Both the position numbers and the translations under genes were made by a program. Shown one piece after another: positions 25,553 through 59,934 of a DNA stretch of 64,000 nucleotides. Where the stretch lies: positions 1 through 64,000 of the forward strand of contig MU626373.1 of NCBI GenBank assembly GCA_025603075.1, written 5' to 3'. Every line of letters begins with the position of its first letter. The stretch's first letter is position 1. A model generated the notes under the pieces. The model did no database searches and was not told the DNA's origin. It saw only the letters and a program-made list of their open reading frames with translations. Source of the stretch: Neoconidiobolus thromboides FSU 785. Its lineage: Eukaryota > Fungi > Entomophthoromycota.

Positions 25553-26524
25553 TTATTTGCATAAATCTGATACTGGTTTCCTCCATCTTAAGGCGTATGA
25601 GAATAAGTTGAACATAATACAAACAGCAATGATACCAATACACCAAAAGAAAGCAATATAGTCTGCAAGACAACCCATAACTGGAGAACTAGGTTGGGAA
25701 TTTCTAACAGTTGGTAAAGCGAAAAGAATAGAAACACCAACAGCTATTAAAGGAGGAGGTACTTCACGTCTTGATATAACATAATCATAGGTGATGATTC
25801 CATATGGGATAACTAATCCCCACATAACAGCCATTAAGAAAAACGAAAATGCTTGACTGGAACTAGGTGTAGCTAAGTCAATTGTAATAGCTATAGCATC
25901 TGGATTATTATAAGTACCAAGGAAATAATCTTCATTGTCGTCTTTAACTAGATATATTTCTACATGTGGAGTATGGCTTACTAAACTTTCATCAACATAT
26001 ATGGCTAGTGGAAGGGCTTCTTTTTTAGAACCTAAACAAATAGCAGTAAATAGACCAAAGTAAGATTCAAGTGGATAGTCACGAACAGTTCCATAAACTA
26101 TTGGAATAGTGAAACTGACGGTGTTGGTAGGTTGCCCTTTTATGATGATCTTCTTTTCATATAATAAATCACAAGTGATATTTTGATTTGAGGTATAAAA
26201 CTCATCAACATAATCATCGCCAAGCATTCGAAATCTAGCATTCAAATTAATTTTACGAGCTGGTGCTTCCACAGATTGGAATGAAAGGTATAGCGTAACA
26301 CCACTAAATGGTTTATTATCTTCAAGTTCATGTTCTGAAAATGTATATCCTTGAGATACATACACAGGTTCAAGGTTCTTGAGCTCTCTTGTATATGGGT
26401 CATGCATCTTGTTAATAACTGGGACTACAATGATACACCATAGAGATATACCTATAAACGAGAGAAATATTCTCCTGAGTCTTGTTGTGGACATAATCTT
26501 TCCATAGAAATCTTTGATTGACAT
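25553..26524 (-). CDS. DUF4436-like membrane protein, paralog A (intronless; N-terminal TM, extracellular domain, 3 C-terminal TMs)
   Basis: 323-aa ORF; RDYPLE and ILFALPTVRNSQPSSPVMGCLADYIAFFWC recall the DUF4436 signature (YPFD; LFA..PLRN..PG.PP.G...D....W) from memory; clear paralog at 58960-59934. Confidence 0.75.
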   Translation of the reverse strand: MSIKDFYGKIMSTTRLRRIFLSFIGISLWCIIVVPVINKMHDPYTRELKNLEPVYVSQGYTFSEHELEDNKPFSGVTLYLSFQSVEAPARKINLNARFRMLGDDYVDEFYTSNQNITCDLLYEKKIIIKGQPTNTVSFTIPIVYGTVRDYPLESYFGLFTAICLGSKKEALPLAIYVDESLVSHTPHVEIYLVKDDNEDYFLGTYNNPDAIAITIDLATPSSSQAFSFFLMAVMWGLVIPYGIITYDYVISRREVPPPLIAVGVSILFALPTVRNSQPSSPVMGCLADYIAFFWCIGIIAVCIMFNLFSYALRWRKPVSDLCK

Positions 26525-29076: not shown

Positions 29077-32000
29077 TTAAGGTTTAGAATCAGGGATGAT
29101 GGTACGTACAGTAGGATGCATTAGCAAACCTTGGATTGTAGGATTAAACTTGATAGGTCTAAAACGTTGAGTGAGGAAGAATCTCAAGCTAGAGTAAAGC
29201 AACAGGACAGAACCAGTGAGAATCGGACCAACAAGAAAGACAAGGGGTACATTTGGTGAAAGGTTAAATACTGTATTGACCCCAGGACAATAAACAAGGA
29301 AGCCCATTAATACAAAACCAATTAAGAGACCGACAAAATTACGATAGTTAGTAAAAATATGTTTTCCAAATGGATAAGTGATTTTAGATTTACAGCAGAA
29401 CATATTAAAGGCTTGGATAATGACTACTGAAAAGGTATACACAGTCTCGAATTGGGCTAATATTTCTAACAATTCGCTTCGTTTAAATTGCTGCCCGTTA
29501 CTTACTGAAAATATAGTGTCACGATCTGGTAGATCCGAAAAGGCAAAGGTTTTTTGCAATTCAATAGAATCGTAAAAATTAATTCCACGATAACTTAGTA
29601 AAAAGAAAGAGCATACAGCAGCACCAGTAACTTCAATTATACCAGCTTCAAAGAAAGCCCAAGATATTAATTCGACATCAACAATAATCTCATTCTCGGT
29701 TTTTTCAAATAGCTCTTTCCAATAAGTTAATGTATATAGCCTTGAAATGCTATGAACGATCCTTTTAAAACTTGATACCTGAATTTCTTCCCCGGTTTCT
29801 GGATCTCTTTCAAGCTTAATCTCACGCGATTTTACTCTGCGGAATCTTTCTACTGACTCTTTAGTTACTGGTTTACGTGGTGCAAGCCTCATAAGCCCTG
29901 TCTTTGTCTCTGGTTTATCCCAAGCAAATGATAAAGCTAAGCAAAGTTCATAACCAAGATCAAGAGAAATAATCTGAAGCGAAGTCAAGAGTAATGGGAT
30001 AGGAACAGCAATATAAAGAAGCTGTGGAATAACCTCTGGCATTGTATGAGTTACTGTATATCTTATACTTTTTTTTAGATTTGCAAAGATAAGACGACCT
30101 TCTTCAATACCACGAATAGTCGAGGCAAAATTATCATCAAGTAAAATCATTGAAGCGGCTTCTTTAGACACATCCGAACCAGATTCATTCATTGCAATAC
30201 CAAGATCTGCTTTCTTTAAAGCTGGGGAATCATTAACACCATCACCAGTGACACCTACAATATGTCCCATAGATTGAGCACGTTTAACAATTTCAAGCTT
30301 ATGACGTGGTGAAGTACGAGCAAATATAATTTCATCTTTAGAAAAGATATTGTCCCATTCTTGGTCATTTAACGCGTCAATTTGTTCACCATGTATGACA
30401 ATAGCACCATATTCATCTTCACCAATAGATTCGATTGGACGTCCAGTTTTTTTGGCGACCATTTGTTTAGTATCAGAAAGCATCAAATTAATTTTACGAC
30501 CAATGGCTTCAGCAGTAAGTGGATGATCACCAGTTACCATCATTACGCGAATGCCTGCTGTTCTGCACATACCAATAGCTTCACGTACACCATGCTTTGG
30601 AGGATCCTCTAATGAAGTGAGACCAACAAAGGTTAAACCAGTTGTTGGGTAATTGTTAAGCTTCTTATCGAATACAAAATCTTTAGGGAACTGATCTCTT
30701 GGTAATAAAAGTTGAGCAAATGCAAGTACACGATGTCCTTTACCAGCCATAAGCTCATAAATTTCTTGGAACTGTGCTTTATGCTCTTCATTGAGTGGAA
30801 TAATTTGCCCTTCCATTAAAATAGTTGTACAAAGGCGTAATACTCTTTCTGGAGCACCTTTTAAGTAAAGGGTAAGATCGCCATTAGCATGAGGAATTTG
30901 ACTAATAGTCATTGCCCATTTGTTATCCGAATTGAATGGAATGTCAAAAACACGAGGGTATTTAGTTTGGAGCTCATCAAAATCGTTTTGGCTTTGAGCA
31001 GCAAATCGAATAAGACCAGCTTCGGTGGCATCACCAATAATTTCTCTTTTATCAACCGGTATATCAGTACGGTCAAATTTAGCTCTGGAATTTAATGAAC
31101 AGTTTAATAAAATTTCTTCCATTCCAGGAGAAGCTATTTGAACAGGATTGTCAGCATTTCCTAAATTTCTCAATGAAGAATAAAGCTTATTAGATGACCA
31201 CACGCTAGTAACAGTCATTTGGTTACGAGTGAGAGTTCCTGTTTTATCAGTGGCAAGGAGAGTAATTGCTCCCAAAGTTTCAACACCTTGAAGGTCCTTC
31301 ACCAAAACGTTTTGTTTAGCCATACGCTTAGCAGCAAAAGTAAGCAACATAGTTAAAGTAGCTGGAAGACCTTCTGGTACCCAACCACAAAAAACGCCTA
31401 CTCCAAAAGTTAAACAATCTTTTAAAGCCATACCACTGGTGAGTCCTAATAGGAAGAAAATAATCCCAGTCAAAAAAGCTACTGAGGCAACTAGCTTAAC
31501 ATAAATACTAATCTCTACTGAAAGTGGGGAAGGGTTCTTCTTTTCATTTGTTGTTAAACCAGCAATTTGACCTAACACAGTAGAATCACCAGTTTTAATT
31601 ATAATACCATAACCTTCACCAGCAACAACTAGGGTTCCGTTAAAACCAATATTATGCGCTTCAAGTGGGTTTTTCATATCGTTATCAACAGTACGTGACT
31701 GTGGTTCTGATTCTCCAGTAAGTGAAGAGTTGTCTACTTTCATTTCGGAAACATTAAATAGATATAAATCAGCAGGGATTTTATCACCCATACGAACAAA
31801 TACAATATCACCTGGGACTAAATCAGCTCCAGGAATTTGTGTTAATGATCCACCGCGTACTACACGGCATTGTTGAGGAATCATATTAAGAAAAGATTCT
31901 AAAGCATTTGCCGATTTTTGTAATTGAATAAACTCAATAATTGCATTAAGAATAGATACTCCAACTAATATAGCACCCACATAAGAAGAAGAAAAATTAT

Positions 32001-32286
32001 TGATAGGATCAATAGCAAAGATGATGAATGTCATCAAACCGGCTAGGATTAAGAGCACATTAAAAAGATTTAATAAACATTCGAGAAAGCGAACAATCGG
32101 GTGCTTTCTTTTAGCTGGACTTAATGTGTTTGGACCATATATCTCTTTAGCCTTTTCAATTTTTTCTAATGATAAACCTTGGCTTTCAGCTGGCTTAGAA
32201 GGATTAACGGAGGTCTCAAATTTTTTACATACATCTTCAAGTGGGAGTAAATGTTCCAGAATCTCAACTTGTTTAGCTTCTTTCAT
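29077..32286 (-). CDS. P-type cation-transporting ATPase, Na,K/H,K-ATPase-like (type IIC-related), intronless
   Basis: DNSSLTGESEPQ, VPEGL, DKTGTLT phosphorylation site, KGAPERVL, MVTGDHPLTA, FARTSP, TGDGVNDSPALKKAD; ~10 TM segments; 1069 aa. Confidence 0.95.
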   Translation of the reverse strand: MKEAKQVEILEHLLPLEDVCKKFETSVNPSKPAESQGLSLEKIEKAKEIYGPNTLSPAKRKHPIVRFLECLLNLFNVLLILAGLMTFIIFAIDPINNFSSSYVGAILVGVSILNAIIEFIQLQKSANALESFLNMIPQQCRVVRGGSLTQIPGADLVPGDIVFVRMGDKIPADLYLFNVSEMKVDNSSLTGESEPQSRTVDNDMKNPLEAHNIGFNGTLVVAGEGYGIIIKTGDSTVLGQIAGLTTNEKKNPSPLSVEISIYVKLVASVAFLTGIIFFLLGLTSGMALKDCLTFGVGVFCGWVPEGLPATLTMLLTFAAKRMAKQNVLVKDLQGVETLGAITLLATDKTGTLTRNQMTVTSVWSSNKLYSSLRNLGNADNPVQIASPGMEEILLNCSLNSRAKFDRTDIPVDKREIIGDATEAGLIRFAAQSQNDFDELQTKYPRVFDIPFNSDNKWAMTISQIPHANGDLTLYLKGAPERVLRLCTTILMEGQIIPLNEEHKAQFQEIYELMAGKGHRVLAFAQLLLPRDQFPKDFVFDKKLNNYPTTGLTFVGLTSLEDPPKHGVREAIGMCRTAGIRVMMVTGDHPLTAEAIGRKINLMLSDTKQMVAKKTGRPIESIGEDEYGAIVIHGEQIDALNDQEWDNIFSKDEIIFARTSPRHKLEIVKRAQSMGHIVGVTGDGVNDSPALKKADLGIAMNESGSDVSKEAASMILLDDNFASTIRGIEEGRLIFANLKKSIRYTVTHTMPEVIPQLLYIAVPIPLLLTSLQIISLDLGYELCLALSFAWDKPETKTGLMRLAPRKPVTKESVERFRRVKSREIKLERDPETGEEIQVSSFKRIVHSISRLYTLTYWKELFEKTENEIIVDVELISWAFFEAGIIEVTGAAVCSFFLLSYRGINFYDSIELQKTFAFSDLPDRDTIFSVSNGQQFKRSELLEILAQFETVYTFSVVIIQAFNMFCCKSKITYPFGKHIFTNYRNFVGLLIGFVLMGFLVYCPGVNTVFNLSPNVPLVFLVGPILTGSVLLLYSSLRFFLTQRFRPIKFNPTIQGLLMHPTVRTIIPDSKP

Positions 32287-58959: not shown

Positions 58960-59934
58960 ATGGCCATTAAAGATTTGTATGAAAGGATCATGTCCACAAC
59001 AAGACTTAGAAGAATCTTTCTCACCTTTATAGGTGTTTGTATTTGGTGTATCATCGTGATTCCAGTTGTTATAAAAATTCATGATCCAGAATTAAGAGAA
59101 GTCAAAAATTCATTACCTGACTATGTACCTGAAGGATATACGCTTTTAGAAGATGAACTTAAAGACAAAAAGGCATTTAGTGGTGTTGCGTTGTTTCTTT
59201 CATTTCAATCTGTAGAAGCACCAGCTCGTAAAATTAATTTACTTGCTAAATTTAAAATGACTGGGGAAGACTATGTAGATCAGTTCTCTAACTCGAATCA
59301 AAATGTTACTTGTAATTTATTATATGGGAAACAAACAATTATCAAGGGACAACCTATCAATAGCGTCAGTTTGACTATACCAATTATTTATGGAACTATT
59401 CGTGATTATCCACTGGAACAATATTATGCTTTATTGACGGCTATTTGTTTAGACTCTAAGAAGAAATCTATTCCATTAAGTATCTTTGTGGATAAAAGTT
59501 TAGTAAGTCATACACCAGAGATACAAGCGGAATTAATTAAAAATGGCAATAATAAAGAGAATTTCCTTGGTACTTATGATGATTTAGATGCTATAGCCAT
59601 TGCAATTGAATTAGCTACACCTAGTTCTAGTAAAGCATTTTCATTTTTCTTAATGGCCGTTATGTGGGGATTAGCTATCCCATATGGAATCATCACCTAT
59701 GATTATGTTATATCAAGACGTGAAGTACCTCCTCCTTTAATAGCTGTTGGTGTTTCTATTCTTTTTGCTTTACCAAGTATTAGAAATTCTCAACCTGGTT
59801 CTCCAGTTATGGGTTGTCTTGCAGATTATATTGCTTTCTTTTGGTGTATTGGTATCATTGCTGTTTGCATTATGTTCAACTTATTCTCATACGCCTTAAG
59901 ATGGAGAAAACCAGTTTCAGATTTAACTAAATAA
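58960..59934 (+). CDS. DUF4436-like membrane protein, paralog B (intronless)
   Basis: 324-aa ORF colinear with 25553-26524; RDYPLE, FALPSIRNSQPGSPVMGCLADYIAFFWC. Confidence 0.75.
   Translation: MAIKDLYERIMSTTRLRRIFLTFIGVCIWCIIVIPVVIKIHDPELREVKNSLPDYVPEGYTLLEDELKDKKAFSGVALFLSFQSVEAPARKINLLAKFKMTGEDYVDQFSNSNQNVTCNLLYGKQTIIKGQPINSVSLTIPIIYGTIRDYPLEQYYALLTAICLDSKKKSIPLSIFVDKSLVSHTPEIQAELIKNGNNKENFLGTYDDLDAIAIAIELATPSSSKAFSFFLMAVMWGLAIPYGIITYDYVISRREVPPPLIAVGVSILFALPSIRNSQPGSPVMGCLADYIAFFWCIGIIAVCIMFNLFSYALRWRKPVSDLTK

Follow-up and report, generated by a model that had tools for sequence, protein, structure and literature searches.

[quoted passage not shown] Conservation reaches 100% for the Pro of the Pro-loop, 94% for the pre-M1 Arg, 88% for the M2–M3 Pro and 77% for the M1 Pro (position 14′) (PMC4795631, Table 1). 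[quoted passage not shown] No pLGICs were detected in Fungi in the inventory of Jaiteh et al. (2016, PMC4795631), which agrees with the statement, made in an earlier sequence-only reading of the DNA analyzed here, that such channels are not generally described from fungi. In the literature that we searched, the coverage of which was incomplete, we found no described function for proteins with a DUF4436 domain (Pfam accession number, PF14494), the sole mention being a passing one in a paper on Aspergillus flavus, and no paper that links DUF4436 to pLGICs.

The window, that is, the whole stretch of DNA that was analyzed, comprises 64,000 nucleotides of contig MU626373.1 of Neoconidiobolus thromboides FSU 785. 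The sequence-only reading had proposed that a DUF4436-like protein encoded in it resembles a pLGIC subunit that lacks M4. The best explanation of our results, which we judge to be moderately probable, is that the protein is a vertically inherited fungal member of DUF4436 with a predicted pLGIC-type subunit fold (an N-terminal membrane helix, TM0, followed by a β-sandwich and M1–M2–M3, without M4), and that it is a putative pentameric channel.

The DUF4436 gene of the window and its paralogues

The minus strand at positions 25553–26524 contains a single intact ATG-to-stop open reading frame (ORF) of 323 amino acids (aa). A Pfam scan assigned the product to DUF4436 (E = 1.7e-17; 64.1 bits against a gathering cut-off of 23.2 bits), as had been proposed; the match covers positions 81–247 of the 255 in the profile, and the same model is matched by all 91 aligned relatives. 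NCBIfam gave no useful match for the protein, and a single-sequence search of the PDB sequences gave nothing useful. The features of the gene and of a second copy in the window are as follows.

25553..26524, minus strand: complete single-exon coding sequence of a DUF4436 protein, 323 codons plus stop (ORF, Pfam match)
26405..26470, minus strand: TM0, N-terminal membrane helix, residues 19–40, with a conserved RLRR ahead of it; canonical pLGICs have none
25871..26308, minus strand: extracytoplasmic β-sandwich, residues 73–218, nine predicted strands, aligning with the pLGIC extracellular domain
26066..26077, minus strand: Pro-loop motif YPLE, residues 150–153 (family consensus YPFD), aligned to pLGIC FPFD
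25868..25870, minus strand: Thr219, the pre-M1 position, which is Arg in 85/91 family members and in pLGICs
25775..25864, minus strand: M1-equivalent helix, residues 221–250
25700..25756, minus strand: M2-equivalent helix, residues 257–275, candidate pore-lining helix
25661..25705, minus strand: M2–M3-loop equivalent, RNSQPSSPVMGCLAD, with R274, G284 and D288 invariant in the family and P278 and P281 nearly so
25589..25669, minus strand: M3-equivalent helix, residues 286–312; a short, basic C-terminal tail comes after it, and M4 is absent
58960..59934, plus strand: second intact DUF4436 paralogue in the window, 324 aa, 76% identical

Translation and a hydropathy scan confirmed the ORF, the quoted motifs and the arrangement of one N-terminal and three C-terminal membrane helices. 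RDYPLE was found at residues 148–153 and AITIDLA at residues 210–216, RREVPPP, RNSQPSSPVMG and LADYIAFFWC were likewise present in the translation, and four hydrophobic segments were detected at about residues 19–40, 225–246, 255–273 and 285–312. Basic residues occur at the N-terminus, in the RRE loop and in the C-terminal RWRK, a placement that fits an N-in topology with the middle region of about 180 aa outside the cell. The claim that M4 is lacking also held, since the chain ends 11 residues past the M3-equivalent helix. The presence of TM0 is conserved in the family, with RR ahead of it and aromatic residues behind it, and its sequence is variable, as expected of a lipid-facing helix. The dN/dS values between the window gene and its closest paralogues were 0.19–0.33; the gene is under purifying selection and is maintained. 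The window also contains an intronless 1069-aa ORF with a GC3 of 0.23 (29077–32286, minus strand), which is located on the same strand 2.5 kb upstream of the DUF4436 gene.

A six-frame search of the whole assembly detected 17 DUF4436 loci above the Pfam cut-off in N. thromboides FSU 785. Tandem clusters of two to four copies were found on contigs C46 (11.6–26.7 kb), C121 (8.5–10.9 kb) and C175 (20.0–23.0 kb), which suggests that the family grew to at least 17 loci by local duplication. Five divergent paralogues on these three contigs (L007, with the intron at 2336–2390, L008, L009, L010 and L011) share a phase-2 GT..AG intron of about 50–60 nt inside the codon for W294, at the start of the M3-equivalent helix: their reading frames halt directly after the conserved FFW and resume past the intron. 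For these five, exon 1 alone was used and the exons were left unjoined. The six copies closest to the window gene do not have this intron, which indicates that it was lost or gained within the family.

The public gene model of the second paralogue in the window (58960–59934, plus strand; P0002, K502DRAFT_293289, 285 aa) starts at Met11 and excises 29 in-frame residues (75–103) as an intron. These residues constitute the conserved first two strands of the ectodomain, which are kept in all paralogues, so that the gene product is probably the full 324 aa of the uninterrupted ORF. The window protein also contains Cys118 (26171–26173) and Cys163 (26036–26038); among the N. thromboides paralogues, nine have both residues and two have neither, and the pair is nearly absent from the rest of the DUF4436 family. 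It looks like a putative lineage-specific disulfide, with its two cysteines placed at some distance on either side of the Pro-loop region.

Distribution and inheritance of the family

Word-indexed protein searches, with either the single protein or the paralogue alignment as query, gave proteins of this genome only, and an exhaustive profile search was used instead. It detected 1536 representative DUF4436 clusters at E ≤ 1e-3, 831 of them at E ≤ 1e-10. Entomophthoromycotina, Kickxellomycotina, Mortierellomycotina, Mucoromycotina, Blastocladiomycota and Chytridiomycota were among the best 150 of the 1536 representatives, with Entomophthora muscae, Conidiobolus coronatus, Dispira, Mortierellomycotina, Cunninghamella, Blastocladiella, Paraphysoderma and the chytrid Globomyces among the named members, and the ESM Atlas clusters extend the range to Basidiomycota, Pseudomonadota, Actinomycetota and Cyanobacteriota. 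The description of DUF4436 as a mainly actinobacterial family must therefore be abandoned, because the family occurs across all major fungal groups. Five family matches (P0010, P0017, P0028, P0091 and P0122, one of them named “XapX-like” in its source) are 513–2627 aa long or fall into two to three stretches; they may be tandem fusions, gene-model fusions or real domain fusions.

One representative, P0060, was found on a bacterial contig; a relative with 73% identity is encoded in a metagenome-assembled genome (MAG) of Ignavibacteria. The P0060 gene is accompanied by genes for a secreted reprolysin-like protease upstream and a methyltransferase downstream, and by RF-1, a neighborhood that is kept in two close relatives only and is uninformative on the function of DUF4436. 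Among 401 sampled genomes of the phylum of this MAG, DUF4436 was found once and canonical pLGICs three times, indicating that both are sparse there.

In a FastTree phylogeny of the 91 members, the six closest N. thromboides copies formed one clade. This clade was nested in a group of 12 rows (SH-like support, 99), which also contained Entomophthora, Conidiobolus and one further N. thromboides protein. The next group out was Dispira, and the deep branching between bacterial and eukaryotic members was without resolution. The sequence-only reading had regarded the gene as probably acquired horizontally, because it is intronless in an intron-rich genome. The intronless ORF does suit a recent acquisition from bacteria, and the family occurs in bacteria too, but we rejected this explanation as highly improbable: the genome carries 17 loci, partly in tandem clusters; five paralogues share the spliceosomal phase-2 intron at W294; the nearest relatives are Entomophthora and Conidiobolus, and then Dispira, with the strongly supported nesting in Entomophthoromycotina described above; and the GC3 of the window gene, 0.24, is close to the 0.23 of the neighboring P-type ATPase ORF. 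The number of loci, the shared intron, dN/dS and GC3 together show a gene family that is resident and maintained, not one recently imported.

Predicted fold and signature residues

The AlphaFold2 (AF2) model of the window protein, built from the 91-sequence alignment, had a pLDDT of 92.1 and a pTM of 0.82, and placed a helix at residues 14–41, nine strands within residues 75–218, and helices at 221–250, 257–275 and 286–312. Foldseek gave at least 500 PDB matches to this model at E ≤ 1e-3. Among the best matches listed (about 50), all were pLGICs (E = 1.6e-8, probability 1.0, about 300 columns), with TM-scores of only 0.3–0.4. VIA-align superimposed residues 73–318 of the model on the pLGIC chain from β1 to the end of M3, with Z up to 10.2 and 209–220 residues aligned at an rmsd of 5–6 Å. 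In an unbiased search of 48,161 representative PDB chains, which was independent of Foldseek, ranks 1–14 were all pLGICs (Z about 10), including ZAC, GABA-A, GluCl, GLIC and sTeLIC; DeCLIC ranked 16 and ELIC 21. Every non-pLGIC match in this search involved the helical part of the model alone (about 80–111 residues). In the predicted structures, the β-sandwich was joined directly to M1–M2–M3 in the pLGIC arrangement (Z 9.5–10.2 over 208–225 residues).

Similar results were obtained for the bacterial protein P0060, modeled as a replicate: its pLDDT was 93.5, the top nine matches of the wide search were pLGICs (Z about 10), and the Foldseek E-value was 2e-8. P0060 carries an extra C-terminal helix, which does not appear to be an M4, because it is highly charged and not membrane-spanning. 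For the single-sequence model in ESM Atlas, the nearest named neighbors outside DUF4436 were glycine-receptor-type clusters (TM 0.51, residues 74–323). Both Foldseek and the unbiased search thus upheld, for the predicted model, the proposal of a pLGIC-like subunit fold composed of a β-sandwich and M1–M3; with Z about 10, an rmsd of 5–6 Å and TM-scores of 0.3–0.4, the predicted similarity is moderate.

At the level of profiles, the Pfam models Neur_chan_LBD (PF02931) and Neur_chan_memb (PF02932) gave no match to the window protein at E ≤ 1, and, for the 91 relatives, the 25 families with the most matches included no Neur_chan model at E ≤ 10. A search of the N. thromboides genome for a canonical pLGIC gave none: there was no PF02931 match, and PF02932 had only a sub-threshold match of 17 bits elsewhere. 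We compared DUF4436 with a bacterial pLGIC profile of 30 sequences, gathered from genomes found with PF02931. Hhalign aligned the two over 148 columns from the Pro-loop to M3 with a probability of 55%, an E-value of 1.2e-4 and a score of 40.6; reversed profiles scored 31–32 (E = 2–3e-3) and column shuffles at most 20.5. The ectodomain alone gave E = 1.6e-4 against 5e-3 for its reversed control, and the membrane domain alone was not significant. When the DUF4436 profile was compared with PDB sequences, the best matches, all sub-significant, were octopus chemotactile receptors and GluCl, aligned YPFD to YPFD and Arg to Arg. With a pLGIC HMM, real DUF4436 sequences outscored the reversed ones in 62 of 83 pairs, a proportion that yields no clean probability as the sequences are related, and the best domain began at the Pro-loop in 45 of 90 sequences. 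These comparisons lend moderate support to homology with pLGICs. As a side observation, one bacterial genome (G053) contains a canonical pLGIC gene (L021:1135–2202, minus strand) that is split by one TAA just past its YPFD Pro-loop into ORFs of 157 aa and 196 aa, which could reflect a pseudogene, a sequencing error or a recoding event.

The signature residues of the superfamily were then sought in the 91-member DUF4436 alignment, to which all of the following family counts refer. Position 150 is Y or F in 91/91 sequences, position 151 is P in 90/91, and position 153 is D in 78/91 and E in another 11/91. Arg occupies the pre-M1 column (219) in 85/91, P278 is present in 89/91 and P281 in 87/91, R274, G284 and D288 are present in 91/91 each, and the likely β9 position (184) is aromatic in 64/91. 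Hhalign paired DUF4436 positions 151, 153, 219, 281 and 288 with invariant or near-invariant pLGIC positions. In the window protein, Y150-P151-L152-E153 is located between the predicted strands 136–144 and 154–164, and P281 is aligned to the invariant Pro of the pLGIC M2–M3 loop, the counterpart of which is P278 or P281. In the hhalign and family alignments, the Pro-loop, the M2–M3 loop Pro and the Asp at the start of M3, features to which the sequence-only reading had pointed, are in register with those of pLGICs. At the pre-M1 position, the family has the expected Arg, whereas the window copy has Thr219. Loss of this Arg was confined to sequences with Glu in place of the Pro-loop Asp; the joint change fits a coupled pair, but goes back to one or two events within a single lineage. 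With YPLE and Thr219, the window copy is derived. The kink Pro of M1 was not conserved: the column paired with it by hhalign holds A, L, G, V or C, and W235 is conserved instead. The models and the alignment together show a predicted pLGIC-like subunit fold, in which conservation is concentrated at the interface that, in pLGICs, couples the ectodomain to the pore.

A high hydrophobicity characterizes the M2-equivalent helix, the inner half of which is variable among family members, unlike in canonical M2. In the hhalign register, positions 261, 265, 268, 272 and 275 fall on pLGIC 2′, 6′, 9′, 13′ and 16′, and this face, which could also serve for packing, bears an invariant Phe, an Asn and residues that are small or polar. 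The R-N-S-Q-P of the loop is similar to R-A-S-L-P, which occupies 19′ to 23′ in anionic receptors. A register with R274 as 19′, in which RNSQP would correspond to RASLP, is equally possible on this likeness, and the candidate M2 positions for R274 are 15′, 16′ or 19′.

Possible mechanism and comparison with known channels

If the protein functions as a channel, its subunits would be arranged about a central axis; with at least 17 paralogues in the genome, homo- or hetero-pentamers would be the most likely form, and the M2-equivalent helix would line the pore. The ectodomain would sense a signal and relay it by way of the Pro-loop, the pre-M1 position and the invariant R274...P278...P281...G284...D288 loop, and ion flux would be gated in this way. 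TM0 might take the peripheral place of M4, because it has the same in-to-out orientation and shows the variability of a lipid-facing helix. The window copy would be a derived subunit, in which the superfamily-typical Asp–Arg pair is replaced. A broader proposal, which we put forward only tentatively, is that DUF4436 is an ancient, unrecognized branch of the Pro-loop receptors in which an N-terminal helix performs the lipid-facing role of M4, forming working ligand-, pH- or ion-gated pentameric channels throughout Fungi and scattered in Bacteria.

The protein may instead have a pLGIC fold, quite possibly by homology, without being a pentameric channel; it would then act, for example, as a receptor or scaffold, regulate a partner, or have a lipid- or cell-wall-related role, and the conserved loop would be needed for that function instead of for gating. 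Such an interpretation is consistent with the variable and strongly hydrophobic inner half of the M2 equivalent, in which a small-xxx-small stripe at 261/265/269/272 is a possible packing face, with the missing M4 and the non-conserved M1 Pro, with the loss of the Arg of the Asp–Arg pair in the window copy, and with the non-significant profile comparison of the membrane domain. We nevertheless consider it rather unlikely, because the residues that the family conserves best coincide exactly with the gating interface of pLGICs, two independent models show both domains in the pLGIC arrangement, and no positive evidence was obtained for any alternative function, the one bacterial neighborhood seen being uninformative. 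Another explanation is convergence or a modeling artefact, in which AlphaFold would have drawn an unrelated membrane family to the well-represented pLGIC fold. Two AF2 models from differently ordered alignments and the single-sequence ESM model converged on one fold, however, and Foldseek returned E about 1e-8 with a probability of 1.0. Five independently conserved residues match the superfamily signature in order and in structural place, and real sequences exceeded their reversed decoys with the pLGIC HMM, the match beginning at the Pro-loop in half of them (45/90). These observations make an artefact improbable, even though the Pfam Neur_chan models match none, hhalign gave only 55% with reversed controls at E 2–3e-3, and the structural agreement is limited to Z about 10 and an rmsd of 5–6 Å. 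We retain, as the explanation to be preferred, a vertically inherited subunit with a predicted pLGIC fold.

If DUF4436 proteins are true relatives of pLGICs, the range of the superfamily extends to all major fungal lineages, and the family offers a natural experiment on the need for M4 and on its replacement by a helix from the opposite terminus. More than 1500 clusters of a family without a described function would gain a testable hypothesis, namely, a pentamer with a gated pore and a coupling loop. The family could point to unrecognized sensing or ion-flux pathways in fungi, including the insect-associated Entomophthoromycotina. Were the ancient-branch proposal true, Fungi would have pLGICs, and the expansion to 17 genes in N. 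thromboides would represent a diversified chemosensory or ion-flux repertoire.

Compared with the Pfam family PF14494, the window protein is a bona fide member; it and its closest paralogues differ from the family in being derived, with YPLE for YPFD, Thr or Gln for the pre-M1 Arg, and the lineage-specific Cys118/Cys163 pair. Prokaryotic pLGICs (GLIC, ELIC, sTeLIC and DeCLIC) share with it a compact, Cys-less β-sandwich ectodomain that leads straight into M1–M3. For GLIC (6hja), residues 73–317 of the model matched residues 17–284 of the chain with Z 9.5, and ELIC, sTeLIC and DeCLIC gave Z 8.8–9.3. The [F/Y]PxD Pro-loop, the pre-M1 Arg (at the family level), the M2–M3 Pro and the M3-start Asp occur in identical order, and both kinds of protein are sparse and scattered among bacteria. 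DUF4436 proteins differ from prokaryotic pLGICs in lacking M4 and in having a conserved N-terminal membrane helix where pLGICs have a cleaved signal peptide. Their ectodomain is smaller (about 146 residues, nine strands), they lack a conserved M1 Pro, their M2 equivalent has a higher hydrophobicity and a lower conservation, and there is no detectable Pfam Neur_chan match. The eukaryotic Cys-loop receptors (GlyR, GABA-A, nAChR, ZAC and GluCl) gave the best structural matches (E = 1.6e-8, Z 10.2) and likewise have an Asp shortly before M3, whereas the window protein, at 10–14% identity, has neither the Cys-loop disulfide nor the long M3–M4 cytoplasmic loop and M4. What appears to be new here is a predicted pLGIC fold with a different layout of its membrane helices, in a kingdom thought to lack pLGICs.
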